The notes under the pieces are model-generated. The model was not told the origin of the DNA. It did not search any database and was given only the letters and a program-made list of their open reading frames with translations. Of a stretch of DNA of 64,000 bases, positions 24,111 to 53,477 are shown one piece after another. Each line of letters begins with the position of its first letter. Positions within the stretch are counted from its first letter, which is position 1. A program made the translations under genes and the position numbers. The DNA comes from Macrostomum lignano. Its lineage: Eukaryota. Location: the NCBI GenBank assembly GCA_002269645.1, contig NIVC01000781.1, forward strand, positions 1 through 64,000. Reading direction: 5' to 3'.

Positions 24111-26994
24111 ATGGTACTAAACCTGGACCCCTGCCACGTGCAAGTGCTGCACTGTTCGCACTGCCAATTCCTGACCCTGTCAGTCAGCCGGCTGCTAGAG
24201 CACTGTCACACGCACAGGCAGGCATCCGGGATAGTGTTCTACCAGTGCGAGGCCTGCGGCCTGGTTGGCACCCATCAGTCGCTGCTAGTTGAGCACGCCA
24301 GAGCTTGGCATAGGGATGTGGAGCCGGTGCCAGTGAAGATTCTATCCCGGTCAACTGTTAGCAACGAGGCGCTGGTCACTAGCGCTTGCGCATTCTGCGA
24401 TTTCACCTGTTCAGACGACCTGAGCGAAACTAATAATACTGAGCCGAGCCTGTCTGAGCACTATCAGACTCAGCACAATGTGAAAAATGTCACCGTTGGC
24501 AGCGGCTCCGGTGTGCGGACTCAGCCTCGGCTTCATCACGATCAGGCCCGGCCGGAGGGCGATCCGGACCTTGGCGTGGCCGCGGCGCCTTGTCAACAGA
24601 ATCTTCGCCTTCAACATCAACGTCTGAGCCTTCGACATCGGCGGCCTCGGCGGAATCTTCGTCTGGGCGATTTTGATGATGAGGAGGATGATGATTGCGT
24701 AGTTGGGGACATGGAAGATGACGGTCGCGCTGACGAGGCTGGTGTCTCGAATCACCGTCGGGGAACTGGCGACCTAACCGTCGGCTCCGTCAACGGCGTT
24801 GCTGTCAGCGATCAAGTTGAAGACGAAGACTTTGCGATGGCGACGGTCGGAGTTGGCGACACTGCGGCGATGCGGAACTCGTCGACCGAGATTGCCGACT
24901 GCTTGCTGCCTTCGCATGGGCTGGTGAGACTGGGGATTGTGGGCTGTGTCAGACTGGGGATTGTGGGCTGTGTCAGACTGGGGATTGTGGGCTGTGTCAG
25001 ACTGGGGATTGTGGGCTGTGTCAGACTGGGGATTGTGGGCTGTGTCAGACTGGCGATTGTGGGCTGTATCAGACTGGGGATTGTGGGCTGTGTCAGACTG
25101 TTACAGTCACTGTGTCAGTCTGTTACAGTCACTGTGTCAGTCTGTTACAGTCACTGTGTCAGTCTGTTACAGTCACTGTGTCAGACTGGGGATTGTGGGC
25201 TGTGTCAGACTGTTACAGTCACTGTGTCAGTCTGTTACAGTCACTGTGTCAAACTGTTACAGTCGCTGTGTCAGTCTGTTACAGTCACTGTGTCAGTCTG
25301 TTACAGTCACTGTGTCAGCTGTCATTTGTGTTCCAGACGCTGACGCTGGTGCCCGACGGTCCACCGCCCCAAACCTCGGCCACCATCGACTATTCCGACG
25401 CTGCGGACGCCGACAACGACCCTGTTGAGCTGCCCGACGATGAGGCTGAGTCGTCCACCACCGCCTCCGTTGGCCCGTTTGGCGCCGGTCAAGGCAGCGG
25501 CGGCGGCGCCGGGGGAATCGGCTTTGGCGACGATGACGACATCGAGACCGACGACACTCTGTCTGTGTCGCACAAGACTTCGCTGTTGGCCGATTCTGTC
25601 GACGGATCGACGCCGCTGACTGTGCCGCCGCTGCTGCTATATTCCTCCCGGCCATTGCCGGTGACTACACAGGCAGCGGCGTCATCTTCATCGACGTCGA
25701 CATCGAGGCATTCGACTCGTCGGCCTCCGCTGCCGCAGCTGGCGTCGTTAGCTTCACCAATGGATGATTCGAGCAGCAGTCTGCTGGCTGAGGACAGCGT
25801 ACTGTACGCTGCAAGTGGTGAGCAGTGGCTAGCGGGATCTGTGATCTTCCTTGTCTAGCATAACACTACTCAAAGTTTAATCTATAGCTCCTATTTGTAC
25901 TTGTACTAGACCAAACTTTACTTGTACCAGAGCAACCCTAACCCTGTACCAGAGCAACCCTAACCCTGTACCAGAGCAACCCTAAACATGTACCAGAGCA
26001 ACCCTAACCCTGTACCAGAGCAACCCTAACCCTGTACCAGAGCAACCCTAAACATGTACCAGAGCAACCCTAACCCTGTACCAGAGCAACCCTAACCCTG
26101 TACCAGAGCAACCCTAACCCTGTACCAGAGCAACCCTAAACATGTACCAGAGCAACCCTAACCCTGTACCAGAGCAACCCTAACCCTGTACCAGAGCAAC
26201 CCTAACCCTGTACCAGAGCAACCCTAACCCTTGTACCAAAGCAACCCTAACCCTGTACCAGAGCAACCCTAAACCTGTACCAGAGCAACCGTGACCCTGT
26301 ACCAGAGCAACCCTAACCCTGTACCAGAGCAACCCTAAACCTGTACCAGAGCAACCCTACCCTCTACCAGAGCAACCGTGACCCTGTACCAGAGCAATTA
26401 TAACCCTGTACCAGAGCAACCCTAACCCTGTACCAGAGCAACCCTACCCTGTACCAGAGCAACCCTAACCCTGTACCAGAGCAACCCAAGCTCATACTAA
26501 CCCCATTGACTGCCCATTCGCACCTCTCCAACCCCGCAGGCAGGCACATGAAATGCGACAAATGCGAGATGGTATTTGGCAGCGCCAAGGCGCTCAACCA
26601 TCACCAGTCGAGGGCGCACGGCACCAGAGAGGAGCTGTGCTGCGCCGAGTGTCGCACAAGATTCGCTAGCACGTTCAGCCTTCAAGAGCACACCCTGCTA
26701 GTGCACGGCCGCATCGTTGAACTGTGGTGCTGCGACGTCTGCCAGCGCGTGTTCACCCACCTGAGCTCAATGCGTCGGCACAAACGATTGGCCCATTCGA
26801 ATCAGAAGCCGATTCACTCCTGCGGCCAGTGCGGCATGGTGTTCTCCCGCAAGGACAAACTGCTGCTTCATCATAGGCGTCACATTCCCTGCTCTATGCA
26901 GCCGCCGCCGACTGCGGATGCCGCCGTCAGGAACGCCGAGAAGCGAGCAGCTGCCGCCGCTGCTCAAACTGTTGCCAGAGAGGCGGCTAATTAA
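24111..26994 (+). CDS. C2H2 zinc-finger protein, 3 exons, about 582 aa
   Basis: Exons 24111-24923, 25337-25817 and 26540-26994 with consistent phases (0, 1). Three atypical N-terminal fingers and four C-terminal C2H2 fingers (e.g. CDVCQRVFTHLSSMRRHKRLAH, CGQCGMVFSRKDKLLLHHRRH), separated by an acidic linker. The start codon is not certain. Confidence 0.88.
24925..25320 (+). repeat. Two interleaved minisatellites (24-bp GACTGGGGATTGTGGGCTGTGTCA and 22-bp GTCTGTTACAGTCACTGTGTCA) in ZnF intron 1
   Basis: Read directly. Confidence 0.9.
25922..26487 (+). repeat. 22-bp minisatellite (GTACCAGAGCAACCCTAACCCT)n with a telomere-like core, in ZnF intron 2
   Basis: Read directly. Confidence 0.93.
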
Positions 26995-28450
26995 TTAGTT
27001 TATTTATTTACTGGCTTTTAGAGCTAATTTTAGTTTGAGTTTTAGTTACTAATTAGATGACGAGGCAGAAATTGAATCAAATTTACTCCGGCCGTTTACC
27101 TGTTTATAGCAAAATTCAAATTCAAAATTTGAAAAAGTTAGCATCCTTTGTTAATACTTTACTTTTGCGTTTTTTACTTTCATTTTAGCCTTGCGGTTTG
27201 ATTCCCTCAATATTGCAATAGTTAATCTGCATGGACTAATCCTTTTTAATAACTATATGCGGCATTCTTGTTATTATATTATTATTTATACATACTAACA
27301 GTAGTATGTACATTTATATATCGCGTTTTGTTATAATTTTTATCTTGAAATTGAATACAATTGCTACTACTGCTAGCCTATTATTACAAAGCTACTGTTA
27401 GTAATACATGCGTTGTGGTCATCTTTTCATCATTTCGTTTGTTCATCCGTTATCAATGTTCTATATGTATAAAAATTAACTCATTTTGTTTTAATGAATA
27501 ATTTTTTTTCTAAGACTGTTCTGTCAGGATTTTGTTGGATTTTAGTTATAAATATTGTATTGTTTTAAATATTTATAATAGATAAAAATTGCTTTATTTA
27601 CAATGCTTCATCAAGCATTCGATTGGTTTAATTTTATTATTATGCATTCTTCTACCAAAATAGTGTGCATATCTCCTACTTATACTAGTAGGGATAGTTA
27701 GAAATTTTTCTTCAGCACAAAATTCTAGCATTTTTGTTGCCATTGTGTGTACAGATGTTATTCTACCTGAAAATAATGTGATACGTGGATATAGTGTGAG
27801 CTAATGTTCACAATTATTATTATATCCCTATATAGAATAATTAGAAAAAAAGCAATTTGCTGCAATAATGCAATCATACTACTGCTCTACTACTGTCTCT
27901 CTGTGCTTGCTTTAACTAGCAGCGCTTAGTCGTCTTTGTTCCCCGTTTCCAGCTATGTACCGTGCCTGCCGCATTAAATGTTAAAATTATTCATTAAATT
28001 AGCACATTCTGTTTAGTGCTTTTTGTTATTCATATTATTATATATCATTCTATTCATGAAAAATAAAATTCGCACGGATGCCTGGTCATTTCTTACTGGC
28101 TACTGAAAAAAGCAGAAATCCAAAGTGTCCTTGGTTATTAGTCATTTTTTGAAGTTAAAATATTTACCAATACAATTATTAATGCTTCTTAGAATATAGG
28201 CTAGCAGTGAAAGTACGCTTACAAGTAGGCGGACTCTAAAAAAACACGTTAAGTTAAAAAGTACGCGTGCACTTTTTTAGTACGCGTGCACTTTTTTAGT
28301 ACAATTGATCAAGTACGCAAGCACTAATTAAATACGCGTACATAACCTGCACCAAATACATGAGTGCGTGTGTACCTAAAATTCAAGTACATTAGCACTA
28401 AGCACAAGTATACGCTAAAGGTACGGTTAAAGTACTCGTGCACTTTTCAG

Positions 28451-30553
28451 CAGGAATTGTCCGAGTTTAGCCTGCCGGAGACGGAGCGGTCCAACCCGCT
28501 GACTACCGACATCGATCGCAGCCCGGACCCGGCCGGACTGCTGCACCAGGTCGATCAGCTGCTGCTGGCCGACTTGCGCCAACAGGCTGTCCTGTTGGAT
28601 GTCCAGCTCGACCGGCTGGCCGGCGTTATGGCCGACACTGTCGCTTCCGATGGCGTTGTCGTCCTGTCCGGCTGCGGCACCAGCGGCCGGCTGGCGACTT
28701 TGTGCTGCGCCGTGGCCAATCGGCAACTTCGACTGCGTCAATTGCCGGCCGCATTTCGGCCGTGCCTGGCCGGCGGTCGGTCGGCTTTCGCCGCGTCGGT
28801 CGAACCGGCCGAGGACGCCGCAGGAGAGGGCGTCGCGGAATTGCTTGCGTTGCTAGGGAACAAGGACAAAAGCAGCAAATCGCTTCTAGTCGGTGTCAGC
28901 TGCGGCCTGTCCGCCCCGTTCGTGCTCGGCCAGGTCGGCTTGTGCCTCGGCCGGCCAGACCTGGGCGCCTATCCCGCTCTGATCGGCTTCAACCAAGTTG
29001 GCGACGTGCGCGCCGATCGAGTCGACGGACTGCCCTGGCCGGGCGGGTGTCGCGCGGTTGCTAAACGACTGGCGGAGGCCGACAATGTCGACCGGGGATT
29101 GCTAATTAATCCGTCTATTGGTGTGAGGGAAAGATTATTAAAAGTACTTAAAAAGTGCAAGGTGTACTCAAGTTTGAACGCAAGTGAGATTACGCCTTAG
29201 CGTACATTTGCACTTTTGAATAGGCACCTTTATCTGAAAATTCACTTTTAATGGGTTTATACTGACTCATGAAAGACCATAAAAAGTAGCTTATAAAAAG
29301 TGCATCTAAACTTAATGTTACGAGGGTCCTACAAGTAAAATTTTGTCATTCAAATGTCCCTTTAAATATCAAATATCTAATGCTTCTATATAAAGGGCGC
29401 GTGCGCACTTATGCTATGGTTTATAAAAGTACACATGTAAAGTACAAAATTTAGAATTTCGTCCTGCCTACAATCGTACTTTTGTCTAGTTTTGTTCGTG
29501 CGCCTTCAAAAAATAAAAGTACATTTGATTAGTACATCAGCATCCGCGCAGGCCGAGGCGATCGCAGGTTCGAGTCGGATGAAAGGCGGCACGGCGACTT
29601 TGATCCTGCTGTTCCACGCTGTCGGCAGAATGCTGGCTAATCTCGAGCCGTCAGCTGATCACTCGGTTGCTAGGGGCTGGCTATCGATTTCTGAGCATTT
29701 GGACCTGCTGGACCGGCTGTTGGAATCTGTGAAAGAAGGCGGCGCAGTTTTGAACGACTGGATGGCGCACTTTGGCGACAGTGTCGGCGTCAATGGTGAC
29801 GGCGTTGTCTACGCTTTCGACAATGCCCTCAGCTCCGCCATGGCCGCCATCGACGCCTCCGAGTGTCCGCCAACTTTCGGCGCCTCGGCCGGCGACGTTC
29901 GCGCAATTGGCGACAGTCACGTTGAAGAGTTTCTGGCCGCTATTCCATTGGTTGCTAGAGACGCAGCTATGGTTGCTAAGGAAGCTGAAACGTTAGCTGA
30001 ACCGGTGAATACTGAGAAGGCAGTTGCTACGGACGCTATCGGCTTTGCTCTGACAAGTCCAACTCTCCGATTAGACATTCCAGCCCGAGTCAGCCGCAGC
30101 GTAGCCTTACGGTTGCCTAGCAACCAGCTCAGCGCTATCGTCTACAATGCCGATCTGACTTTGGATCTCTCCTGGCTACCAAACGATCCACTCTGGCTAG
30201 ACTATGCCGGTGTCATAGCAACCAAGCTGACGCTTAATCGCCTATCAACGGGTGGTTTCGTTCGAGCCGGCAAGACGTTCGGCAATCGCATGGTCTGCCT
30301 GCAGCCCTCCAACAGCAAGTTGGCCGACAGAGCGGCTCGGCTTGTCGCTTCCGCAGCTGGCGTGGGACTGACCGAAGCTCGCGCCGCTCTGACGAGGTTC
30401 GGCGAACCACCCGCTGGACAGATGTCGTCTAAGACGGTGTCCCCGGTGGCTGGAGCGGTGCTGCTGCTTCGCCGACCCGAGCTGAGCGTCTCCGAGGCGC
30501 GCCAACTGTTGGCGGACTGCGGTGGGCGACTGAGCGACCTGCTGGTCACTTGA
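28451..30553 (+). CDS. GCKR: Glucokinase regulatory protein-like (two SIS domains, MurQ-related), 2 exons
   Basis: Exons 28451-29122 and 29552-30553 (phase 0). Motifs TERSNP, GCGTSGRL, GVSCGLSAPFV, GSSRMKGGTAT, DASECPPTFG, LNRLSTGGFVRAGK.FGNRM..L..SNSKL match the GCKR/MurQ family. There is no in-frame ATG after the TTTTCAG acceptor until 28628, so the 5' end is unresolved. Confidence 0.88.
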
Positions 30554-31145
30554 TAGTCACGTGACTTTGACTGAGCAATTTGAACAAATTCTCTTTGAAT
30601 CATTCCGTGAATGAGCTTAGAATTATTTGGCGATTTCCCGGTCAATTTATTTATTTGCGCCTAATCACGGTAACAATTTTACAAGTTTTAGTAATTTTTT
30701 ACTAACAGACTTTTGATTTTACTTTATTTGAACACCATTTTTGATTGAAAATGAATATAACAGCAATCGGTGCAAACTGATTTTATTTGCATAATTTTTT
30801 TCGATATTATTTTTACTTTTAAATAATTATCAACCCTTAGATTAAGTGTCCATCATACATTTCATAAGTGAAAACTATGAAATCATTTTGAAGCACATTT
30901 GCGCGTCAGCTACTGCTAGTAGAAATATATACATTTTATAGTATTTTTACTGCCAGGACTATAAAACATTTGTTCGAAGTTGTAGCTATTTGCGCATTAG
31001 GATTAGGATCCAGTATCCTTATATTTAGGCTTGCTAGATTTGACATTTCCAACATTTCCCAGCTAATGCAAATCTGCAGTATTCGGAATTTCACTCCCAA
31101 TTGGTGCTTAAAAAGCGCTGGTGCGGCGTGCACTCGCCGCGTCAG

Positions 31146-31243
31146 CCAATGATAGAGCGTCCGCCTGCCCGGGTTCGAATCCTCAAACCAACAGTTCGCC
31201 TGATTGGCCAATTGGCGTTGAGAGCCGAGCTAAGTCACGTGAC
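31146..31243 (+). promoter_or_regulatory. CCAAT/ATTGG boxes and a GTCACGTGAC E-box at the TERT 5' end
   Basis: CCAAT 31146-31150, ATTGGCCAATTGG 31203-31215, GTCACGTGAC 31234-31243. An identical 10-mer lies at 30556-30565. Function is inferred only. Confidence 0.35.
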
Positions 31244-31682
31244 TGGCTATCGATCGATCTGTCAGGAGATCGAAGCGGCCTACGCTTCGACTGGTCGGGC
31301 CTTCCTAAGCCGCTGGGTTCGCCACCATCGAGTTCGGGATGGCAAACCGTTGAATCCCACGCCGCAATTTGAAGTGGCCGAACTGGCGCGGCGCCTGCTG
31401 GAGCTCACTGTGCGGCCGAGCTGTCAAGGACTGCTAGCCGCTGGCGGGGACTCTTGGCCAGCCGTTGCTAGACTGCTGCGGTACTATGTTGGCCTGAGTG
31501 TTGGCTCAGCTGCCAGGCTGGGTATTTGGCTGGAGGGAGAGCGGCTGGGTGGCCAACAGCGATCGAGACGGCGGCGGCGACGACGGCGGAGGCTGGAGGA
31601 CGGGCAGGACCAGAATGGCAACGGGAGGTGAGAGGCATCGAGGCTGCTGCATTTCAATTAGTTTTTATGTTTGCACATTTAA

Positions 31683-31750
<68 letters not shown>

Positions 31751-31767
31751 CGATAGACAGACAGACC

Positions 31768-31805
<38 letters not shown>

Positions 31806-34739
31806 GACAGACAGACAGAGACAGACAGACAGACAGACAGCTGAAATGACATTAAAAAATTTGTGTCGAATTCATTACTGTTAATACTATACTACTACAG
31901 GGCCGCCAACTCCGGGAACTTGGATCCTGGCCAGCATCAGCTGCATCAAGCCGCAGCGCACGCCATCATCTACGTGTCTATTCGTCATCTTCTTTGTCCG
32001 GCCCTGCGCAGCCTGTTCCACGCTACCACATCTTCTCCTGGCTCCACCGGCGATTGCCTCTATTATCGCAAGCGCGCCTGGTACGGCGCCCTGAAAAGCG
32101 CGCTAGCCGATTTGCATCGCCGAGGCGTACTGGCGCGCCAGCCGACTCCAGTGCGGCGCTTACTAGATGGCGCCTATCTGGGACTGGGTCACCTGCGGCT
32201 TGTCCCAAAGCAGTCCGACTCCACCGGAAGTGGCAGTTTCCGGCCTCTCTGCGTCTTCCCCGCCGCTGTGCCCGCAGCCGGCGCCCTGCTGCGCTGCGGC
32301 TCGTTGAACCGGCGCTTGAGCGACCTGCTGAACGTCCTGCGGCGCCTGTGCCCGCCGCGTCGGTCGCGACAGTCGATGCTGCGCCGGCTGTTGGATTATT
32401 TTCAGCGGCATCGGGACGCTGCGATGGAGGGTGAAAATCAATTTTAATCTAACAAAAAACCCGCCCGAACTCCTCCCCGAAATTCGCCCCCAAATCCACT
32501 TCCAAATTCACCCTCAAATCCGCCTCCAAATCCGCTCTTAAATCCGCCTCTCAATCCGCCCCCAAATCCTCCCCTAAATCTGCTTCTAAATCCGCCCTCA
32601 AATCTACCCCTAAGTCCGCCTCTAAATCCGGCCCCAAATCCGCCCCCAGATCTGCCCTTAAATCCACCCCTAAATCCGCCCCCAAATCCGCTCTCAAATA
32701 CGCCTCTAAATCCTCCCCTAAACCCGCCCTCAAATCCACCCCTAAATCCGCCCCCAAATCCGCTCTCAAATACGCCTCTAAATCTTCCCCTAAACCCGCC
32801 CTTAAATCCGCCCCCAAATCCCCCCTAAATCCGTTCCTAAATCCACCCTTAAATCCACCCCTAAATTCGCCCTCAAATCCGCCCTCAAATCCGCCCCCAA
32901 ATCTGCCCTTAAATTCGCCCTTAAATTCGCCCCTAAATCCGCTCCTAAATCGTCCCCACATCCGCCCCCAGATCCGCCCCTAAATCCGCCCTCAAATCCG
33001 CCCCAAACTGCACCGCCCCACCTCACAGCCGGCGGCTTCAGCCTGATCCGCCTGGACGTGAGTCGCTGCTTCGACTCCATCGATCATCGCCGCCTGCTGA
33101 CTGTCTTCAACGAAGCCGCCGCTGCCGACGCCACTGCCGCAGCGGTGCAGCCGACGACTCCGGCGATGGTGGAAAGAGCCCGTCAGCTGCTTGAACGAAT
33201 GCTGCACCGGCCGGAGGAGGAATCAGAGCCAGTTATTCAGACCAGCGGAGTTCACCTGCGAGTTGGCGACAATTTCTACCAGCTGACCAGGGGCCTGCCG
33301 CAGGGCGCCTCCGTGTCGCCGCTGCTGTGCCACCTGTACTTGGCCAGCTGCGAGCGCGGCTACCTGACGCTGACTGACTCGCTAGAAGCTGGCGATCTCG
33401 GCGATGATGGAAGAGCGCCTCAGAATGATACCGGGCGCCGGCGACCGGACGAACTCCTGCTGTTGAGGTGGGGATTCAGCTGTGTTCCATGTCACACCTG
33501 AGTCCCATCGCACACCTGAGTCAGGGGGGCCGTAGCCCAGCGGTCTAGCGCAGGCTCTGGTGTGCCAGCGACCCAGGCTCGATTCCAAGTGCAGTCCCAT
33601 TAATTTGGGGCTGAATTTGAATCTCGGCTTGGCTCTGCTCGTGCAATTAACGGCCTTGAGAGCCAACCCCCCAAGGCGCAGTGAAGTGTACATGCCTAAC
33701 GATAAAATAAAGTTAGGGCCGCTGTACACTCCTGTGTGAGTGTGTGCCTGCGTACGTATCCGCGCGCTTGTATGCCTGCTCAGGGGAGTCGGCGGAATGG
33801 GCAGTAATGCCTCTCGCCGGTTGTGTGCCTATGTCGCTTAAAGTGCGCCAGGGTGCACACAACCCCCCTGCCTCTACTGTAATAAAAAAAAATAATCGCA
33901 CACCTGAGTCCCATCTCACACATGAGCCCCATCTCACACCTGAGTCCCATACCACACCTGAGTCCCATCTCACACCTGCAATTATCTTACACTTACAGTA
34001 GATCCCATCTCACTCCTAGAGCAGATCCCATCTCACACCTACAGTAGACACCTACTGTAGATCCCATCTCACTCCTAGAGCAGATCCCATCTCACTCCTA
34101 GAGCAGATCCCATCTCACACCTACTGTAGACACCTACTGTAGATCCCATCTCACTCCTAGAGCAGATCCCATCTCACTCCTAGAGCAGATCCCAACTCAC
34201 TCCTAGAGCAGATCCCATCTCACTCCTAGAGCAGATCCCATCTCACACCTACAGTAAATCCCATTCCACACCTAGATTCCGTCCCACATCTATATCTCAT
34301 CCCACGCCTAGATCCTATCTCACATCTGTCTCGCTCTGAACATCCAATGTAACACTCTAAAAAGCTATCTCGTAATCTTACCCTGTATGCCATCTCCAAT
34401 CCCACACCTGATCCCCATCCCAGGTACGCAGACGACTACCTCCTGGCCGGCACCCGGCCAGCTGCCACCGCTCGGCTCCTCCGCAAGCTGAACGCCGCCC
34501 TGTCCCGGCTCGGCTTGTCGGCCAATCGATCCAAACTCCGCCTGACCGGGCCCGTTGCCAACTGTCTCTATGGCAACGGTGGCAACGGTGGTTGTCAAGG
34601 CGATTCCAGCGGCGGCGGCAGCGTTGACTGGCTCGGCTGGCGGCTGACTGCTTGCGGCGGCGTCACCTCGGCAACTGCGGGGGACGCCAGCGCCGAGCTG
34701 TCGGATCGGTGCGTCTGTCTGTCTGTCTGTCCGTCTGTC

Positions 34740-34774
<35 letters not shown>

Positions 34775-34792
34775 CTGTCTGTCCGTCTGTCC

Positions 34793-34826
<34 letters not shown>

Positions 34827-34836
34827 GTGTCCGTCC

Positions 34837-34878
<42 letters not shown>

Positions 34879-35687
34879 ATATTTGTCTGTCTTTTCTATT
34901 ATAAGTAGTGTACTTTTAACTACTGACGTAATTGGCTTTTTTAAATCCTACGGCAGCTACTGCCGCTTCTCCGGCCCCGGCCTGGACTCTGCCGGCGTCC
35001 TGCGCCGACTCCAACGGTTCGCCATTGTCAGCGGGCCGCTCGCTTCGCTGCTGCCGCTGCTCAGCCGGCCGGACAGTCCGGCCACCGAGCTGGCCGTCAA
35101 CGCGTCCGACGCCGGCCGAGCGTTCGCCAGGCGGTTGCGCCGGCTGGTGAAGACCAGCCCGCACCGGGTGCGGCTGCTGGCTGCCCCGGAGCTGGCATGG
35201 GCGGCCAGCCGCTGCCTCATGAGACTGGCCGGCAGGGTAGACCGGCGCGCCGAACTCTGGCGCCGGCGCTTGGCGCTGCAGGTGCGACCGATGACTGCCT
35301 TCTGTCTTCCTTTCTCTTTTGCTTCTCCTGCTACTATTCCACTGCTAATCCGCTGATAATCCGCTGCTAATCCGCTGCTAATTCACTGCTAATCCACTGC
35401 TAATCCGCTGATAATCTGCTGCTAATCCGCTGCTAATTCACTGCTAGTCCACTGCTAATCCGCTGATAATCCGCTGCTAATCCGCTGCTAATTCACTGCT
35501 AGTCCACTGCTAATCCGCTGATAATCCGCTGCTAATCCGCTGCTAATCCCACCGACAGGCGGCGTACACGGCGGCTCGCGATCATTTGCGCCCTTATGCT
35601 GGCGAATTCGCCCAGGTGCTGGCCAGAATGCGCCTCTGCTACCTGGCCAGAATGCGACGGTTGGCCGATCAGCTCAGGCCGCTCTGA
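31149..35687 (+). CDS. TERT: Telomerase reverse transcriptase, 6 exons, about 745 aa
   Basis: Exons 31149-31627, 31901-32430, 33029-33467, 34424-34708, 34906-35281, 35559-35687, all GT-AG with matching phases (2,1,2,2,0), total 2238 nt. Motifs in order: T-like (LRSLFHATT...YYRKRAW), 1 (LRLVPK), 2 (FRPL), A ([12 protein letters not shown]), B' ([17 protein letters not shown]), C (LLLR|YADDYLL), D (GLSANRSK), E (WLGWRL), then a CTE. The start codon is uncertain. Confidence 0.93.
31684..31840 (+). repeat. (GACA)n microsatellite in TERT intron 1
   Basis: Read directly. Confidence 0.93.
32460..33020 (+). repeat. About 12-bp degenerate repeat (AAATCCGCCCCC)n in TERT intron 2
   Basis: Read directly. 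Confidence 0.9.
33523..33894 (+). mobile_element. tRNA-derived SINE (family A), full length, in TERT intron 3
   Basis: tRNA-like head (A-box TAGCCCAGCGG, B-box GGCTCGATTCC) and an A-rich tail. 16-bp target-site duplication ATCGCACACCTGAGTC at 33507-33522 and 33895-33910. A near-identical copy lies at 44533-44896. Confidence 0.92.
33895..34300 (+). repeat. Minisatellite (CCCATCTCACTCCTAGAGCAGAT-type) in TERT intron 3
   Basis: Read directly. Confidence 0.85.
34715..34890 (+). repeat. (GTCT)n microsatellite in TERT intron 4
   Basis: Read directly. Confidence 0.93.
35340..35550 (+). repeat. 11-bp repeat (CCGCTGCTAAT)n in TERT intron 5
   Basis: Read directly. Confidence 0.9.
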
Positions 35688-35784: not shown

Positions 35785-38146
35785 TGTCCCTCTCCCCTGT
35801 GCCACTCTCCCCTGTGCCACTCTCCCCTGTGCCACTCTCCCCAGTGCCACTCTCTCCTGTGCCACTCTCCCCTGTGCCACTCTCCCCTGTGCCACTCTCC
35901 CCTGTGCCACTCTCTCCTGTGCCACTCTCCCCTGTGCCACTCTCTCTCCCTGTGCCACTCTCTCTCCCCTGTGCCACTCTCTCTCCCTGTGCCTTCTCTC
36001 TCTCTCTCCCCTGTGCCACTCTCTCTCCCTGTGCCACTCTCTTTCCCCTGTGCCACTCTCCCCTGTGCCACTCTCTCTCCCTGTGCCACTCTCTTTCCCC
36101 TGTGCCACTCTCCCCTGTGCCACTCTCCCCCTGTGCCACTCTCCCCTGTGCCACTCTCCCCCTGTGCCACTCTCCCCTATGCCACTCTCTCCCCTGTGCC
36201 ACTCTGTATCCCTGTGCCACTCTCTCTCCCCTGTGCCACTCTCTTCCCTGTGCCACTCTCCCCTGTGCCACTCTCCCCTGTGCCACTCTCCCCCTGTGCC
36301 ACTCTCTCTCCCTGTGCCACTCTCTTTCCCCTGTGCCACTCTCCCCTGTGCCACTCTCCCCCTGTGCCACTCTCCCCTGTGCCACTCTCCCCTGTGCCAC
36401 TCTCCCCCTGTGCCACTCTCCCCTGTGCCACTCTCCCCTGTGCCAATCTCCCCCTGTGCCACTCTCCCCTGTGCCACTCTCCCCTGTGCCACTCTCCCCC
36501 TGTGCCACTCTCCCCTGTGCCACTCTCCCCCTGTGCCACTCTCCCCTGTGCCACTCTCCCCTGTGCCAATCTCCCCCTGTGCCACTCTCCCCTGTGCCAC
36601 TCTCCCCTGTGCCACTCTCCCCCTGTGCCACTCTCCCCCTGTGCCACTCTCTTTCCCCTGTGCCACTCTCCCCTGTGCCACTCTCTCTCCCTGTGCCACT
36701 CTCTTTCCCCTGTGCCACTCTCCCCTGTGCCACTCTCCCCTGTGCCACTCTCCCCCTGTGCCACTCTCCCCTGTGCCACTCTCCCCCTGTGCCACTCTCC
36801 CCTATGCCACTCTCTCTCCCCTGTGCCACTCTCTATCCCTGTGCCACTCTCTCTCCCCTGTGCCACTCTCTTCCCTGTGCCACTCTCCCCTGTGCCACTC
36901 TCCCCTGTGCCACTCTCCCCCTGTGCCACTCTCTCTCCCTGTGCCACTCTCTATCCCTGTGCCACTCTCTCTCCCCTGTGCCACTCTCCCCCTGTGCCAT
37001 TCTCCCCCTGTGCCACTCTCCCCTGTGCCACTCTCCCCCTGTGCCACTCTCTCTCCCTGTGCCACTCTCCCCTGTGCCACTCTCCCCTGTGCCACTCTCC
37101 CCCTGTGCCACTCTCTCTCCCTGTGCCACTCTCTTTCCCCTGTGCCACTCTCCCCTGTGCCACTCTCCCCCTGTGCCACTCTCCCCTGTGCCACTCTCCC
37201 CCTGTGCCACTCTCCCCTGTGCCACTCTCTTTCCCCTGTGCCACTCTCCCCTGTGCCACTCTCCCCCTGTGCCACTCTCTTTCCCCTGTGCCACTCTCCC
37301 CTGTGCCACTCTCCCCCTGTGCCACTCTCCCCTGTGCCACTCTCCCCTGTGCCAATCTCCCCCTGTGCCACTCTCCCCTGTGCCACTCTCCCCTGTGCCA
37401 CTCTCCCCCTGTGCCACTCTCCCCCTGTGCCACTCTCCCCTGTGCCACTCTCTCTCCCTGTGCCACTCTCTTTCCCCTGTGCCACTCTCCCCTGTGCCAC
37501 TCTCCCCTGTGCCACTCTCCCCCTGTGCCACTCTCCCTGTGCCACTCTCCCCCTGTGCCACTCTCCCCTATGCCACTCTCTCTCCCCTGTGCCACTCTCT
37601 ATCCCTGTGCCACTCTCTCTCCCCTGTGCCACTCTCTTCCCTGTGCCACTCTCCCCTGTGCCACTCTCCCCTGTGCCACTCTCCCCTGTGCCACTCTCCC
37701 CCTGTGCCACTCTCTCTCCCTGTGCCACTCTCTATCCCTGTGCCACTCTCTCTCCCCTGTGCCACTCTCCCCCTGTGCCACTCTCCCCCTGTGCCACTCT
37801 CCCCTGTGCCACTCTCCCCCTGTGCCACTCTCTCTCCCTGTGCCACTCTCTTTCCCCTGTGCCACTCTCCCCTGTGCCACTCTCCCCCTGTGCCACTCTC
37901 CCCTGTGCCACTCTCCCCCTGTGCCACTCTCCCCTGTGCCACTCTCCCCTGTGCCACTCTCCCCCTGTGCCACTCTCCCCTGTGCCACTCTCCCCTGTGC
38001 CACTCTCCCCCTGTGCCACTCTCCCCTGTGCCACTCTCCCCCTGTGCCACTCTCTCTCCCCTGTGCCACTCTCCCCTGTGCCACTCTCCCCTGTGCCACT
38101 CTCCCCTGTGCCACTCTCCCCTGTGCCACTCTCCCCTGTGCCACTC
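35785..38146 (+). repeat. 15-17-bp minisatellite (CCCTGTGCCACTCTC)n, about 2.4 kb, just downstream of TERT
   Basis: Read directly; explains the 740-816-aa artefact ORFs. Confidence 0.97.
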
Positions 38147-38604
38147 TTCTTCAAATAATTGAATTACATGTCTGTGTAACTTATTTTTTGCAATAAGCTT
38201 TTTGCCTTTTTTATTATCTTATATACCAAACCACTCGAAACTATTTTTAGTAAACAGTTTTAAAACCTTCATTCTATCGCATTTGACTACTTAGCAGTAG
38301 TATTGTTATTGTTTCATTCGAAAATTTATTGCACTTTTTTTGAACGAACTTTGGCTATTTTTTATTGTGGCTTTTGAATGAGCTGTTTGACTTTCTATCA
38401 CCCTAAATAATGAAATAGACTAGATTTTTAATTTAGCTACTTTCCCTTTGTATTATGATGTGCAAAGGCTTAATTTTTTACAGATTTTAATTCAAATTTA
38501 GTCATCAAAAGTTCTAATAGAAAATTCGATAAAATAGTATTTTATCGGTACTGAATTAGAAGGTTATAAATTCTTAAAGGGAGTTTATTTTTATTGATAG
38601 CCTC

Positions 38605-43339: not shown

Positions 43340-43486
43340 AGCTTTGCGCAGTGGCAGTACCGTAACCAATGAGGTTTACCCGAGGTGCGGTTATTGCTAG
43401 TTGAAAACTATACCCAATACCCCGCACAGGATGCGTGAAATACCGTAGCCTAGTGCAATATTTGAGGGCTCTCACTGTAGAGCCTA
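43340..43486 (+). ncRNA. U4: U4 spliceosomal snRNA
   Basis: 5' AGCTTTGCGCAGTGGCAGT matches the U4/U6 stem II region. CAATGAGG...CCGAGG forms the 5' kink-turn stem-loop, followed by TTATTGCTAG (stem I) and TTGAAAAC...CCCAATACCCCGC. The central stem is intact, the Sm-like site is AATATTTGA, and the terminal hairpin is GGCTCT-CACTGT-AGAGCC. Confidence 0.95.
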
Positions 43487-44532: not shown

Positions 44533-44896
44533 TTTTTTTTTATTAGAGGCAGGGGGGTTGTGTGCACCCTGGCGCACTTTAAGCGACATAGGCACACAAC
44601 TGGCGAGAGGCATTACTGCCCATTCCGCCGACTCCCCTGAGCAGGCATACAAGCGCGCGGATACGTATGCAGGCACACACTCACACAGGAGTGTACAGCG
44701 GCCCTAACTTTATTTTATCGCTAGGCATGTACACTTTACTGCGCCTTGGGGGTTGGCTCTCAAGGCCGTTAATTGCACGAGCAGAGCCCAGCCGAGATTC
44801 CAATTCAGCCCCAAATTAATGTGACTGCACTTGGAATCGAGCCTGGGTCGCTGGCACACCAGAGCAGCTGCGCTACCGCTGGGCTACGGCCCCCCT
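44533..44896 (-). mobile_element. tRNA-derived SINE (family A), full length
   Basis: Reverse complement of 33523-33894 with only scattered differences. 13-bp target-site duplication CACGTTGATAGAT at 44520-44532 and 44897-44909. Confidence 0.92.
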
Positions 44897-47134
44897 CACG
44901 TTGATAGATGGATCCTCGAGTTCTGAATTGCAATAGAACTTTTTTTAGCTTTAAAGGTATAAAACAGCATCTTGTTCCTGTTGTCACTAAAATTATTGGT
45001 CATTGAAATGGCCTAGACATTAGGTCTAAGTCTAAGGAATAGGCCTGGGCCTAGCTCAAGTTTTTTCTTTAATTAAGAGGGCAGTCCCTGTCTGGCTGTC
45101 TGGTGTAAGGCCAAGATGGCCACAACATTGAATATCTTTGGCTCTGCTCTCTTTTTATCATTAATTAGCAACATAGTAGCTATTGTTATATTAATTATTA
45201 TGTTTAATCAATCATATTCATAAATACTAATGCAATAATAGATTTGAAACTAATTAATTACTTATAGGGTAATAGGCCTAATACAAAAACTTTTATCTTT
45301 TTCACTGTTTAGCCTATGCCAATTTATTCCCTATCGTTACATCTATCAAATCTATCTATCTATTTATTAATAAACTATTGCTACTAGTAATGCTATACAA
45401 AAATTATGATAAATATGCAACAAGGCAAGGTATTTATTTTGGTTATTGGTATTGCCAATGGGTGAATAAATATCTATAAGTTAAGCTATAATAAAAGCTA
45501 AAACCAAAGGAACAACAATGACTAAGGCCTAAGGGCCTAATATAATACAATTCCAATATAGCATCTTTTTAGTAGGCCTATCTATTTCTCTTATTATTAC
45601 TATTAGTGAATAGGAAATAAGTGAAATATATAGACGTAGGCTTATTATTATCTTATATCTATTTAGACACTTAGAGCTATAGTCATCTTGGTGTGTGGCT
45701 ATCTTGGTGTGTGGCTATCTTGGTCATGCGCCAGCTATCCCACCCAAGGCCTATTACTGTTTATTAGGACCTATAGGCATAGCTATATTTCTTGTTCTGA
45801 TAGGCCTAATCTAAATATCTTATATAATTTTAGCAGCACTATAGTAGGCCTAGCAACTCTTATAATCATAATAATTTTTAAAAATTAATAACAAAAACAA
45901 GTTATGAGCAAAAATATAATACTATAAGAGGCTAGAGAAAGAGTTTTTTGTTTTTATATTTAAAAATAATTTAGAGTAGAAAACTGGAATAGAAAATTGC
46001 TAGTCTTAAAGGCTCATTCACACTGCAATCAAATAAAAGACCAAATCACACAACTTGTTTGACCATATAGAATTTCTATTTTTTGTAGAAATTGAAAAAA
46101 TCACTTGAAAAACTTAGCAAACTTAAAAATTTTCAAATTCAGCAACAAAAGTTAATAATGCAAAGGTTAGTTAATTAACTAAAATGTTATACATTAGTTG
46201 CTTACCTCTTACATAGCATCCCAAGTTGCACAACACACAAAACTAAACTCAAGCCATTCTATTTCAATTTTCAATGATTTGGTCTTTGTCTAGTTTGACT
46301 GTCGCTTCAAAATTGATTGGTCAATATACCAGTTAGGTTAGTAACTATTTTATTATTTTCTATCACATGAGCCAGGGGTCAGCAAACTCTGGCTGGATTC
46401 AATTTGAATTCAAGATTGTTCGTTTCAAAGAATGAAATTGTTTTCTCAAGTTTGCTGAAAATATATACAATTCAGGCTTAGCTAGTGATACATATATACA
46501 AAATTTCTTGTATAACAAATTAATAAACTTGTATTATCTTCCTCTAAACCCTAGCTTAGCTATTCTAGGCTAGGCCTAGATTCTAGGCTAGGCTAGGCCT
46601 AGATTAGGCTAGGCCTCTAAACCCTAGCCAGATAAGACTAATTAGAATATCTTGGATAGGTATAATATAAATCTCAAAACAAAATGAGTATCAAAATACT
46701 ATAGTTAGTATAATGAGCAATAATAGGCTCAGCTAGTGATACATATGCATAATATTTCTTGCACAACAAATTGAAAAACTTGTATTATCCTCTTCTAAAC
46801 CCCAGCCTAGTCATTCTAGGCTAGGCCTTAATACTTGACTCTAGAAGTATTAGAACTTTACTTTTTTGTTTTGGCTTATATCCTATCCTAATCATGTTAT
46901 ATCTCTATAGGCTATTTGTCATCACCTATCAAGATAGCCATTCACCTGCAAAGATAGGTGTTAATAGCAATGGTAGATCCAAAGTGCTCAATATGACCTT
47001 AAATAGGCTAGATTTTTATTATCTTTCAAATTTGTATGTTGCAACAGATATAATGGAGGGGAGCACTCTGATTTGTAGGAAATTAGTGACAATCCAAAGT
47101 TAGCACCTATATAGACACTTTGCAATGGTGTCTC

Positions 47135-47715: not shown

Positions 47716-49868
47716 ATGACAGACCGAATGCGAGCTGGCGCGGTGCCAACACCGCCAGCCGGTTCCACTGGTCCTCATCTGCTGGATGTCGGCGGTGGCG
47801 GCGGTGGGATTCCGTCAGCTTTTCAACAGTCACATTATCAGTTCCCCGGAGCCACTCAGCAGCAGCTGAGCCAACAATTCGGACCAGGGGCCATCGATCC
47901 AGCAATCTACGCTGCTGGCGGCATTGCCAACGATAAACGATGGGGCAGCAGCGGCGGTGGAGCTTCAACGATTGAAGCAGCCGGAGATCTGGATGTTGCT
48001 AGCCGGTTTGGCAGGCTGAATATCTGGGACCAGCAGGGTCGAGGCGGTGCTGGCGGCGTTGCGGGGGCCTCGGGCGGGCCGAAAGCTGCCTGGGGTGCAC
48101 CGGCCGTCACCGATGGACCGTTCATGGCTGGCAGCGGCGGAGGCTGGCCGTCGAGTCCTCAGTTGATGCAGCAGCAGCAGCAACAGCAGCGGAGGCATCT
48201 GATGCAGCAGCAGCAGCAGCAGCACCCGAGCCTAGGTATCGGTAGCAGCAGCAGCGAGCACGCCATCTCTCAGCCGATCGATGTTGGCGGCGGAAGACGA
48301 GGAGCTGGAGGCGGCGGCGGCCTGAGCGGTGCCGGCGGTGCCTCTGCCGCTTTTCAGGTTGGTGTCTGGTTGAAGAGAGCGAGCCATTTATGCAGCTCGT
48401 TGCGCTCGCTCTTTGATTGTCAGTCATGTTGTTTCACTGTTCGTGCCTTGTCTGCCTGTGTCTGTTAGCTTGTTTATCTGTCTGTCTGTCTGTGTGCATG
48501 CCTGTTTGTCTGTCTGTCTGTGTGCATGCCTGTTTGTCTGTTTATCTGTCTGTCTGTGTGCATGCCTGTTTGTCTGTCTGTCTGTGTGCAAGCCTGTTTG
48601 TCTGTTTATCTGTCTGTCTGTGTGCATGCCTGTTTGTCTGTCTGTCTGTGTGCATGCCTGTTTGTCTGTCTGTCTGTGTGCATGCCTGTTTGTCTGTCTG
48701 TCTGTGTGCATGCCTGTTTGTCTGTTTATCTGTCTGTCTGTGTGCATGCCTGTTTGTCTGTCTGTCTGTGTGCATGCCTGTTTGTCTGTTTATCTGTCTG
48801 TCTGTGTGCATGCCTGTTTGTCTGTCTGTCTGTGTGCATGCCTGTTTGTCTGTTTATCTGTCTGTCTGTGTGCATGCCTGTTTGTCTGTCTGTCTGTGTG
48901 CATGTCTGTTTGTCTGTTTGTTTATCTGTCTGTCTGTGTGCATGCCTGTTTGTCTGTTTGTTTATCTGTCTGTCTGTGTGCATGTCTGTTTGTCTGTTTG
49001 TTTATTTGTCTGTCTGTGTGCATCCCTGTTTGTCTCTGTAGATGCATGTTGGTCTGTCTGTATCTAGATGTAGATGCCTGTTTGTCTTCTGTGTCTGTAG
49101 ATGCCTATTTGTCTGTCTGTGGATGCCTGTTTGTCTGTCTGTTCCTATCTGTCTTCGGTTTTGTTTCAGTCTGTCTGTGTGCATGGCTATGCGTATAATA
49201 AATACCTGTGTTTGGGTATTTAGTATCTGTGTAAGTCAGTTAGTCTGTCTATACTCGTGCTTATCATACCTAACTCTTACTGCATATTCACCAATCCGCC
49301 CAATTCTGCCCAATCGCTGCTGCAGGACGCCCTGTCTCCTAACAGCAGAGACCTGATGGCAACGGGCCTCCAGATAGTTGACCAGGTGCTAGAGAGCGGC
49401 TCTCCTTTAAATAGCGTTGGACATCCGTTGCAACACTTCCAGCAGCAGCAGCAGCAGCAGACTCAACAGCAACAGCAGCAGAACAGCCTTAGCAACGGCT
49501 TAGCAACGGGGCCAATACAGCCGCACGAATATGTCAGCCTGCTGGAGCAGCAGCAGCAGCAGCACTACAGCGAGCTTCAGCGTAGCTTCATGGCCCAGCA
49601 TCATCGGTTGATGGAGAACCAACAGCAACAACAGCAGCACCCGGCAACCGCCTACGGTGCGGCATTCATGCCGTCCACGCCGCCGGAGTCTGGCGAGCTG
49701 GGCCTATTCGAGCAGCATCATCATCCTCGTCATCAGCTGCTTGCTCAGTCTCCGCCTCCGCTGGCCGCCCATCCGCAGCACGTCGTGTTTTCGCCGCCTC
49801 CTCCTCCGCCCCCGCCGCCATCGATGCATCATCAGCAGCATCCGTTTGGAACCTTCACTGACAGAGAT

Positions 49869-49899
<31 letters not shown>

Positions 49900-52800: not shown

Positions 52801-53477
52801 CCTTAAATGACCCCACTGCAGTATTACACGGGTGTCCTTAAATGACCCCACTGCAGTATTGCACGCGTGTCCTTAAACGACCCCACTATAGTATTACTAT
52901 GACCCCACTGTAGTATTACACGCGTGTCCTTAAATGACCCTTGTATTATTGCATGCCTAACCTTCAATGACCCCTGTCCTTAAATGACCCCCAACCCTCA
53001 CCCCTCCCTCAATGTCAGCACGTGCTGGAGCACGGCAAGCCGGAAGACAAGAGCCGCATCGTGAGCCTATTGCGCGGCAAATTCATTTCGCTATCGTCGC
53101 ACAAATTCGCCAGCAATGTTATTGAAAAAGTGGTCGCCCACTCGAGTCGACAGGAGCGCCAGGCTTTGATAGCCGAAATACTGGACGATCCGGATCCGCA
53201 AGCTCTGTACAATATGATGAAGGATCAGTTTGCCAATTACGTCATCCAGCGGATGCTGGACGCTGCGGATCCGGGCCAGCGCAAGGCCCTGATGCACCGG
53301 ATCCGGCCGCACATACCCGGGCTGAGGAAGTTCACCTACGGCAAGCATATTATAGCTAAAATTGAAAAGTACTTTTTGAAATCTGGCGAAGGACAGCAGC
53401 AGCATCAGCAAGACTTGGACGGGTACTCAAGCGGCGCCAGCAGTCTTAACAGCAGCCAAAACAATGGCGGATTATAA
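47716..53477 (+). CDS. PUM: Pumilio (PUF-family RNA-binding protein), 5 exons, about 934 aa
   Basis: Exons 47716-48357, 49326-50462, 51065-51478, 52054-52206, 53019-53477, all phase 0. [13 protein letters not shown] precedes eight PUF repeats with recognition motifs SRFIQ, NYVIQ, CRVIQ, NHVVQ, CRVIQ, NYVIQ, SNVIE, NYVIQ, ending [13 protein letters not shown]. The N-terminus is Q/G/P-rich. Confidence 0.96.
48465..49190 (+). repeat. Compound (TGTC)n / TGTGTGCATGCCTGTT repeat in Pumilio intron 1
   Basis: Read directly. Confidence 0.9.
50500..51035 (+). repeat. About 34-bp minisatellite (GGAGCTGTGGCAGAGCGGGGTGGACAGACAGACA)n in Pumilio intron 2
   Basis: Read directly. Confidence 0.9.
51545..51990 (+). 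repeat. 35-bp minisatellite (ATCCAAGTCCGGCCTTCAAATCACCCCGTGTCTTT)n in Pumilio intron 3
   Basis: Read directly; units are essentially identical. Confidence 0.95.
52380..52995 (+). repeat. 35-bp minisatellite (CCTTAAATGACCCCACTGCAGTATTACACGGGTGT)n in Pumilio intron 4
   Basis: Read directly. Confidence 0.92.

Follow-up and report, generated by a model that had tools for sequence, protein, structure and literature searches.

The 64-kb stretch of Macrostomum lignano DNA analysed here (the window) carries on its + strand a gene whose six exons, running from an ATG at 31149 to a TGA at 35685–35687, join into one 728-aa open reading frame (ORF). Sequence motifs and predicted structure identify the locus as an intact gene for the catalytic subunit of telomerase (TERT). 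An initial annotation of this DNA had placed the gene at exactly these coordinates (31149–35687) and had described a six-exon TERT with intact catalytic aspartates and a CTE, its exons lying between minisatellites. All of this is confirmed, with an array in each of the five introns; the compact size it proposed also stands, with 728 aa in the present model against its estimate of about 745 aa. All five introns begin with GT and end with AG, and the reading frame is intact through every exon junction. The splice sites and the 5' end were placed from sequence and homology only, and because the exon 1/2 junction falls in a non-conserved, low-confidence stretch (aa 130–168), the length could deviate by a few residues from 728 aa. 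The features of the locus are as follows.

30554–31148: spacer between the GKRP ORF and TERT, 33.6% GC, with just short AT-rich ORFs
31149–31627, + strand: exon 1, aa 1–160, phase-2 donor, defined by the ORF and a GT donor; N-terminal helical half of the predicted TRBD
31353–31523: QFP-like stretch in exon 1, aa 69–125
31563–31598: poly-Arg tract in exon 1, aa 139–150
31683–31840: (AGAC)n tandem array in intron 1 (TRF)
31901–32430, + strand: exon 2, aa 160–337, with the T motif and motifs 1 and 2; TERT HMM match at 8e-20
32004–32093: T motif in exon 2, aa 195–224
32187–32210: motif 1, GHLRLVPK, in exon 2
32232–32252: motif 2, GSFRPLC, in exon 2
32471–33004: tandem array of a 12-mer in intron 2 (TRF)
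33029–33467, + strand: exon 3, aa 337–483, uninterrupted, with motif A, the insertion-in-fingers and motif B'; HMM matches
33037–33084: motif A (D346) in exon 3
33085–33252: short insertion-in-fingers region in exon 3, aa 356–411
33274–33342: motif B' (QG) in exon 3
33520–33892: repeated element of 373 bp in intron 3 (blastn within the window)
33895–34327: tandem arrays of an 18/23-mer in intron 3 (TRF)
34424–34708, + strand: exon 4, aa 483–578, with motifs C (YADDYLL; the codon of R483 is split by the intron), D (K520) and E (WLGWRL, G554); HMM match at 2e-4
34713–34892: (GTCT)n tandem array in intron 4 (TRF)
34957–35281, + strand: exon 5, aa 578–686, first part of the CTE (thumb), helical in the AF2 model, with two motifs in common with trematode TERTs, DRYCRFSG and a second of 11 residues
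35330–35549: tandem array of an 11-mer in intron 5 (TRF)
35559–35687, + strand: exon 6, aa 687–728 and TGA, end of the CTE, defined by frame and AG acceptor
35790–38147: array of a 15-mer 3' of the TERT stop, 2.4 kb (TRF)

The introns (273, 598, 956, 248 and 277 bp, spanning 31628–35558) each consist mostly of micro- or minisatellite (TRF), and the GC content of the exons ranges from 62 to 75% (62% in exon 1). GC3 in frame is 73%, which is typical for coding sequence here. The start codon lies in a weak context, with C at -3, and the open frame reaches 105 bp 5' of the ATG, to 31044. A resemblance of the region around the start codon to a SINE, or to a tRNA in its 3' half, was considered and rejected, as Rfam at E ≤ 1, ARAGORN and self-blast were all empty. 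Host genes, namely GKRP, U4 and Pumilio, flank TERT in the window, and self-blast covering the 5' part of the locus found no second copy there. The same-strand GKRP (GCKR) ORF stops at 30553, leaving 595 bp to the TERT ATG, in agreement with the roughly 600 bp first reported. At the left edge of the intervening spacer, at 30555–30566, lies a 12-bp palindrome, AGTCACGTGACT, which recurs in exon 1 at 31233–31244; these are its two occurrences in 64 kb, versus 0.08 expected. Matches of the window GKRP, in fish, Lingula, Acanthaster and molluscs, reach only about 33% identity and include no near-identical protein, and a Pumilio PUF fragment has a best match of 81% identity. A search of metagenomes found no relative.

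The spliced protein scores an E-value of 1.3e-51, well past anything due to chance, against a 48-TERT profile from which the window sequence was left out; positions 405–616 of that profile match at 90 bits. The initial annotation had advised an HMM search and structure prediction, and both point to TERT: Pfam detects RVT_1 (5.6e-14) and Telomerase_RBD (aa 166–230, 26.3 bits against a gathering cut-off of 25), and the predicted structure has a TERT fold with a TRBD-like N-terminal part, whose own matches include no TEN structure. Motifs 1, 2, A, B', C, D and E are all present, the catalytic triad D346/D486/D487 is intact, and the T motif stands immediately N-terminal of RT motif 1. The columns invariant across the 48 TERTs hold F199, T202 and W220 of the T motif, P262, R274, D346 (A), Q428/G429 (B'), D486/D487 (C), K520 (D) and G554 (E). 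The best sequence match in the PDB is Tetrahymena TERT. A search of 1.84 billion cluster representatives returned 175 matches, the top one at 6.6e-13 with 28–33% identity, and the ten best-scoring of these all carry Telomerase_RBD and RVT_1; searched by word index, the complete TERT protein returned nothing at E ≤ 0.01. The 17 best PDB fold matches of the full-length AF2 model (pLDDT 71.6, pTM 0.71) are all TERTs (5e-15 to 1e-9), and the next RTs, those of R2, LINE-1 and group II, follow at about 1e-6, some three orders of magnitude behind. The CTE comprises 174 aa after motif E, versus about 190–200 aa typically, and is modelled as a helical bundle, with a long helix at 678–725 in the exon 6 region; Pfam TERT_C was not detected in the window protein.

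The N-terminus is where this protein departs from full-length TERTs, in which 430–720 aa precede the T motif; here 198 aa do so (to F199), close to the estimate of about 200 aa in the initial annotation. The AF2 model of aa 1–244 (pLDDT 74) forms one all-helical domain, whose best matches, end to end and with probabilities of 0.99–1.0, are the isolated TRBDs 4lmo, 2r4g, 7sbe and 5c9h, these being modest matches of a medium-confidence model (E 2e-3 to 3e-2, TM 0.4–0.5, about 235–262 aligned columns). No TEN structures appear among the fold matches of this model. In the full-length model aa 1–25 are disordered and the rest of the exon 1 region is all-helical. At the sequence level, aa 1–165 show no significant similarity to any TERT, BLASTP of the window N-terminus against that of Dicrocoelium TERT is not significant, and hhalign of aa 1–180 to TEN and TRBD-N alignments gave no significance for either, so that assignment of the N-terminal domain rests on predicted structure. 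MAFFT and hhalign place aa 70–116, weakly (E 0.15, probability 0.4), on the QFP columns (TPxxxV...P...G...W), and a CP-like alignment of aa 7–45 by the same methods is unconvincing.

A TERT profile that adds the window protein to the same set of homologues detects the distant TEN domain of Tetrahymena (2b2a, 1.5e-8). In six-frame translation of the 64 kb, the profile made without the window sequence matches exons 2–4 only, and no TEN-like ORF was found. The spacer between GKRP and TERT, as read from its sequence, leaves no space for TEN-coding exons. With a predicted TRBD fold at the N-terminus and no TEN-like ORF in 64 kb, the model indicates that the TEN domain is absent from TERT as encoded at this locus, as had first been proposed; a TEN-like protein may be encoded beyond the 64-kb window. 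The TRAP element, to which TEN binds, is probably missing too, since both length and predicted structure make the region between motifs A and B' short: it spans 82 aa, versus 110–164 aa in 47 of 48 homologues, and the AF2 insertion-in-fingers comprises helices at 356–373 and 381–395 with a 7-residue loop between them. The region lies wholly inside exon 3, and the short spacing is therefore no splicing artefact.

The top BLASTP matches of the window protein are trematode TERTs of Dicrocoelium and Paragonimus (2e-25, 28% identity across 468 columns that extend into the CTE), and the alignment to Dicrocoelium TERT runs to window aa 711. The CTE is normally fast-evolving; here it is the region of highest identity, 37.8% identical to the Dicrocoelium CTE. 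Because the top matches are trematode and identity peaks in the CTE, there is modest support for the flatworm affinity suspected in the initial annotation. The comparators, Dicrocoelium dendriticum CAH8514128.1 (674 aa) and Paragonimus westermani KAF8561157.1 (577 aa; named 'Telomerase reverse transcriptase' in UniRef), are automatic gene models that could themselves be 5'-truncated. They likewise consist of TRBD, RT and CTE, start 158 aa ahead of the T motif (198 in the window protein), share the CTE motifs CRFSG and VKTSPxRxxLL and the motif C context RYxDDYL, and, like the window protein, are missed by Pfam TERT_C. Their A-to-B' spacing is 65 aa against 82 aa, the window insertion-in-fingers being 17 aa longer, and identity over the RT and whole CTE is only 27–29%. 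Two insertions set the window protein apart from them, one poly-Arg/Gly-rich, separating the QFP-like and T regions, and one Gly-rich, separating motif D from motif E; its coding sequence is also far more GC-rich. In a neighbour-joining tree of the RT domain, which is crude, saturated and unreliable (29/100 bootstrap), the window protein falls beside sequences labelled non-TERT that were found to be trematode TERTs. The CRFSG following motif E was considered as a triclad-specific CTE marker and rejected; the motif is common in TERTs generally and is therefore no taxonomic marker.

The insect mini-TERTs of Tribolium castaneum (3DU5/3KYL, 596 aa) and Spodoptera frugiperda are without TEN, like the window protein, and without TRAP, which is probably missing from it too, and they keep the ring of TRBD, RT and CTE as it does. 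The fold match to Tribolium TERT is significant (2.8e-10) and weaker than that to human or Candida TERT (TMq 0.36–0.40 versus 0.56). Insect TERTs show no specific sequence affinity to the window protein, which is about 130 aa longer, and lepidopteran TERT genes are intronless, in contrast to the five introns found here. The Tribolium and Spodoptera TERTs are catalytically active, the Spodoptera enzyme being genuine and processive despite its TEN and TRAP losses, and many nematode and arthropod TERTs are without TEN (PMC11892584). In overall fold the closest matches are the canonical TERTs (human 7QXB/7TRD, Tetrahymena 7LMA/6D6V), at 5e-15 and a TMq of about 0.56; they share the T motif, motifs 1 to E, the Asp triad and the CTE. 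Compared with them, the window protein has neither the linker nor the TEN domain, some 190 aa in length, and its 82-aa A-to-B' spacing stands against about 120–150 aa, TRAP (which contacts TEN and TPP1) being probably gone. The TERTs of triclad planarians and molluscs were reported to have no GQ (TEN) or CP motif, truncated N-termini and few introns, with five introns in Aplysia (Lai et al. 2017, PMC5405514); the window gene fits this account, matched by description alone. Truncated N-termini were reported across protostomes, as the rule, and platyhelminth sequences outside triclads, including that of Macrostomum, are partial in the published set (PMC5405514).

The most direct challenge to a TEN-less protein is that the gene model is 5'-truncated, with TEN exons missed or lying upstream, beyond or interleaved with GKRP, so that the true protein would have four domains. 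The placing of the splice sites and 5' end from sequence, the disorder of aa 1–25 and the weak start context leave room for such exons; the frame is open up to 31044, where an acceptor is conceivable, and TEN domains evolve fast and may evade profile searches. However, aa 1–244 already make up a full TRBD by fold, the 595-bp spacer (34% GC) is free of long ORFs and is bounded on its 5' side by the end of a same-strand gene, and the 64 kb contain no TEN-like segment, even though a close counterpart of the profile used finds the TEN domain of Tetrahymena. The short, single-exon A-to-B' region also suits TEN-less TERTs, and the Dicrocoelium model begins at the equivalent place. We consider a missed TEN domain unlikely.

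Other explanations question what kind of gene this is. A divergent TERT paralogue or decaying copy, with the canonical telomere-maintaining TERT elsewhere in the genome, could account for the extreme divergence (a best match of 6.6e-13 and 28–33% identity among 1.84 billion cluster representatives, and an empty word-indexed search) and for the low-complexity poly-Arg and Gly-rich insertions in a repeat-filled region. Such a copy seems improbable for a 728-codon ORF that is intact over six exons with canonical splice sites, retains all catalytic and T-motif residues and has an in-frame GC3 of 73%; similar divergence and compactness are also seen in trematode proteins that bear the name of TERT in their own genomes. 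By general view the Penelope-like RTs are the closest RT relatives of TERT. Some of these elements lie near telomeres and Pfam Telomerase_RBD is barely over its cut-off, yet the reading as a retroelement RT, domesticated or resident (Penelope-like, Athena or other), in place of telomerase is scarcely credible here. The T-motif residues are invariant with TERTs, and a TRBD fold is predicted at the N-terminus. In the PDB the 17 top fold matches are TERTs without exception, about three orders of magnitude ahead of R2, LINE-1 and group II RTs, and Pfam, read up to an E-value of 10, shows neither GIY-YIG nor any other endonuclease domain. Five spliceosomal introns, the lack of a second copy in the window by self-blast over the 5' part, and host genes on either side (GKRP, U4, Pumilio) also argue against a mobile element, and the nearest proteins include a trematode one named TERT. 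The T motif, TRBD fold and absence of a Pfam endonuclease domain thus uphold the original reading as TERT rather than a Penelope/Athena-type RT.

We consider it likely, with good confidence, that the locus is the host TERT gene and encodes a compact protein of three domains, TRBD (about aa 1–235), RT (about 236–575) and CTE (about 576–728), without TEN and probably without TRAP. As in the insect telomerases that have neither, the ring of TRBD, RT and CTE would bind telomerase RNA and copy its template onto chromosome 3' ends. TEN and TRAP normally keep hold of the DNA product while repeats are added and serve in recruitment of the TPP1 type; here these tasks would be dispensable or performed by other factors. 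The initial annotation had seen in this layout an independent reduction, a view that is unsupported because trematode TERTs are equally compact and alike in layout and because published surveys already report truncated protostome N-termini. Since the layout is common to trematode TERTs, it is most likely a trait of the flatworm lineage or of protostomes more broadly and not a loss peculiar to this species.

Truncated N-termini have already been described as the rule in protostome TERTs, and so nothing is overturned by these results. For a lineage with partial sequences outside triclads they supply a TERT gene model that is complete and resolved into exons and introns, and they extend the survey of Lai et al. 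(PMC5405514) in that loss of TEN is accompanied by a shortened insertion-in-fingers, with TRAP probably lost as in insects, a state that trematode TERTs share. If confirmed by cDNA, the protein would be a handy small TERT for the study of recruitment and processivity without the TEN-TRAP-TPP1 interface outside arthropods. It can be proposed only tentatively, and with some doubt, that flatworms as a lineage, comprising the present GC-rich genome, which looks free-living, the trematodes and, going by published surveys of motifs, the planarians, run a mini-telomerase from which TEN and TRAP disappeared separately from their loss in insects and nematodes. If that were true, these stem-cell-renewing animals would achieve processivity and recruitment through a different interface. 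Candidates for it would be a substitute for TEN that acts in trans, a reduction of the telomerase RNA like that of Lepidoptera, or a new accessory protein.

On the forward strand between positions 31149 and 35687, six open segments join, by splicing predicted from the sequence, into a single 2187-nt open reading frame of 728 codons followed by TGA, with canonical GT..AG introns throughout:

31149-31627, forward strand, exon 1
31901-32430, forward strand, exon 2
33029-33467, forward strand, exon 3
34424-34708, forward strand, exon 4
34957-35281, forward strand, exon 5
35559-35687, forward strand, exon 6

The initial annotation had these outer coordinates and the six-exon count exactly; its estimate of ~745 aa for the product is corrected to 728 aa. 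The exons have a GC content of 62-75% (73% at third positions), the introns of 42-53%, and the spacer upstream of 34%. Each intron harbors a micro- or minisatellite detected by Tandem Repeats Finder, which also reports a 2.4-kb array of ~146 copies of the 15-mer CTCTCCCCTGTGCCA at 35790-38147, beginning ~100 bp past the stop codon.

This gene codes for a telomerase reverse transcriptase (TERT), as had been proposed initially. Pfam assigned its product RVT_1 (5.6e-14) and Telomerase_RBD (26.3 bits against a cut-off of 25), and no further domain even at E values up to 10. A word-indexed protein search found no relative; scanning 1.84 billion cluster representatives exhaustively with HMMER returned 175 hits at E ≤ 1e-3 (best, 6.6e-13). 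All 10 of the best-scoring hits scanned carry Telomerase_RBD together with RVT_1, most of them TERT_C as well, and the named entries among the best-scoring hits are fungal and plant TERTs; among PDB sequences, Tetrahymena TERT matches best. When aligned with 48 of the hits, the window protein matches the invariant columns in the T motif (F199, T202, W220), motifs 1 (P262) and 2 (R274), motif A (D346, D352), motif B' (G425, Q428, G429, S433), motif C (D486, D487), and motifs D (K520) and E (G554). The spliced product scored E 1.3e-51 against a profile built only from these 48 homologues, with the window protein left out.

Structure prediction converged on the same identity. The 17 best PDB fold matches of the AlphaFold2 model (pLDDT 71.6, pTM 0.71) are all TERTs (human, Tetrahymena, Candida, yeast, and Tribolium), with E values between 5e-15 and 1e-9, and these outrank the next matches, the G2L4, R2, group II, and LINE-1 reverse transcriptases, at ~1e-6. 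Together with the Pfam domains, invariant residues, and profile score, this ranking makes it very unlikely that the reverse transcriptase is of retroelement origin. Further against such an origin, Pfam identified no endonuclease domain in the protein, the gene model contains five spliceosomal introns, and the locus is flanked by host genes, namely a glucokinase regulatory protein (GKRP) homologue, a U4 snRNA, and a Pumilio gene. Features mapped around the TERT gene are:

24111-25343, forward strand, ORF upstream of GKRP with a zinc-finger-like look at its N-terminus
26506-26994, forward strand, ORF upstream of GKRP with at least three C2H2 zinc fingers (8e-13)
28364-30553, forward strand, GKRP homologue directly upstream of TERT (GKRP_SIS_N, 2.6e-24)
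43340-43482, forward strand, full-length U4 spliceosomal snRNA (Rfam RF00015, 108.9 bits, E 8e-24)
~49257-53477, forward strand, Pumilio-family gene (PUF repeats at 50522-51493 and 53022-53477)

The GKRP gene has at least two exons, the one bearing the start codon not having been located; its assembled product is ~33% identical to animal GKRPs (fish, Lingula, Acanthaster, mollusc), and a protein database search found no close relative. Pfam matched nothing in the ORF at 24111-25343, which continues into a repetitive VRLGIVGC / CYSHCVSLLQSLCQ array. In the Pumilio gene, a repetitive Gly/Arg/Gln-rich stretch precedes the PUF repeats at 50522-51493 in the same ORF.

The initial claim that this TERT lacks TEN, the N-terminal domain of canonical TERTs, is very probably correct at this locus, judging from a TRBD-like N-terminus, a short upstream spacer, and a six-frame search. 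Sequence homology to TERTs starts at about aa 165-182, in the T-motif region, which is preceded by 198 aa (~200 in the initial annotation) versus 430-720 aa in full-length TERTs. Residues 1-244 are modeled as an all-helical domain (pLDDT 74) whose best PDB matches are isolated telomerase RNA-binding domains (TRBDs; 4lmo, 2r4g, 7sbe, 5c9h, 4o26) at probabilities of 0.99-1.0 and modest TM scores of 0.4-0.5; no TEN structure appears among its fold matches. Because these alignments cover essentially the entire query and the entire target, the N-terminal 200 aa would be taken up by the TRBD. In sequence, nothing matched residues 1-165 significantly, and hhalign placed aa 70-116 on the QFP motif at an E value of only 0.15. 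Upstream, the same-strand GKRP gene stops at 30553, and the intervening 595 bp (estimated initially at ~600 bp) are AT-rich with short ORFs only, leaving no coding room for TEN. Two TERT profiles run against the six-frame translation of the 64-kb window matched exons 2, 3, and 4 only, at profile positions ~404-854; the N-terminal 400 positions found no match anywhere in it. This search has some power: once the window protein is added to the same set of homologues, the resulting profile picks up even the very distant TEN domain of Tetrahymena (2b2a, 1.5e-8).

In canonical TERTs, the segment between motifs A and B' houses the TRAP element, which packs against TEN. This segment spans 82 aa in the window protein (D346 to Q428), compared with 110-164 aa in 47 of the 48 homologues and 91 aa in the other. 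As it lies entirely within exon 3, a missed exon cannot explain its shortness. The model places two helices there, 356-373 and 381-395, with a loop of 7 residues between them. By sequence and predicted structure, the short segment is thus an internal sign of the TEN-less state, independent of the N-terminal evidence.

Several of the hits that Pfam labeled RVT_1 only are trematode proteins, namely KAF8561157.1 from Paragonimus westermani, named 'Telomerase reverse transcriptase' in UniRef, and CAH8514144.1 and CAH8514128.1 from Dicrocoelium dendriticum. In a local BLASTP of all retrieved sequences, the trematode proteins rank top, with bit scores slightly above those of fungal TERTs (98 versus 93) and higher identity, and theirs is the only match to extend into the C-terminal extension (CTE). 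The Dicrocoelium match (2e-25, 28% identity, 468 columns) runs from motif 2 to aa 711 and hence through the CTE; a three-way alignment gives 31% identity across the RT domain and 37.8% across the CTE, ordinarily the part of TERT that is conserved least. These matches lend modest support to the initial guess of a flatworm source. In the 674-aa Dicrocoelium gene model, the T motif is preceded by 158 aa and motifs A and B' are 65 aa apart, which is the same compact layout without TEN and TRAP. A trematode TERT of this layout speaks against a reduction confined to this species, and the absence of TEN has already been described in other animals; the independent, surprising loss envisaged initially is therefore not upheld.

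The trematode TERTs differ from the window protein in lacking two low-complexity insertions, both modeled with low confidence: a nine-Arg run at aa 139-150 (31563-31598), between the QFP-like and T regions, and a Gly/Asn-rich stretch at aa ~529-548 (34560-34620), between motifs D and E. The Arg run could be a nuclear or nucleolar targeting signal.

Several noncoding features also were observed. The 12-bp palindrome AGTCACGTGACT, with the E-box core CACGTG, occurs at 30555-30566, 2 bp past the GKRP stop, and at 31233-31244, 85 bp into TERT exon 1, bracketing the spacer; 0.08 copies are expected in 64 kb versus the two found, and none of 100 shuffles yielded two or more. The human TERT start site is flanked by E-boxes, and the palindromes may be regulatory. 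The 18-mer minisatellite of TERT intron 3 contains an element of 373 bp (33520-33892) that bears an A-rich tail and has an inverted copy, 95% identical, 11 kb downstream at 44533-44899 on the reverse strand. To the eye, the 5' end of this element resembles a tRNA, but ARAGORN called none in it. The same 16 bp (ATCGCACACCTGAGTC) flank it on both sides and may be a target-site duplication or just units of the array. It probably represents a SINE-like mobile element. Further long satellites with a strand bias are suggested by extreme GC skew (-0.6 to -0.74) over several other multi-kb stretches (~8-10, 14-16, 20-22, and 56-64 kb, the last being the final 8 kb of the window).

In sequence and predicted structure, the RT active site of the protein is complete, preceded by a TRBD-like fold at the N-terminus that carries the T motif and followed by a helical thumb. 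The TRBD, RT, and CTE would form the TERT ring, which would bind a telomerase RNA and synthesize telomeric repeats; in the absence of a TEN-TRAP pairing, other surfaces or partners would have to provide for product retention and recruitment, a proposal also made for insects. TEN is missing from many TERTs of nematodes and arthropods, those of Tribolium and Spodoptera lack both TEN and TRAP, and an insect TERT that lacks the two and has a tiny RNA has been shown to be a genuine, processive telomerase (PMC11892584). With TEN loss already published, the window gene is of a known type. For trematodes and Macrostomum, the survey by Lai et al. (PMC5405514) had no more than partial TERT sequences. 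What is new is a complete gene model for this TERT, the finding that flatworm-type TERTs have a short A-to-B' region as well, and the lineage-specific conservation of their CTE.
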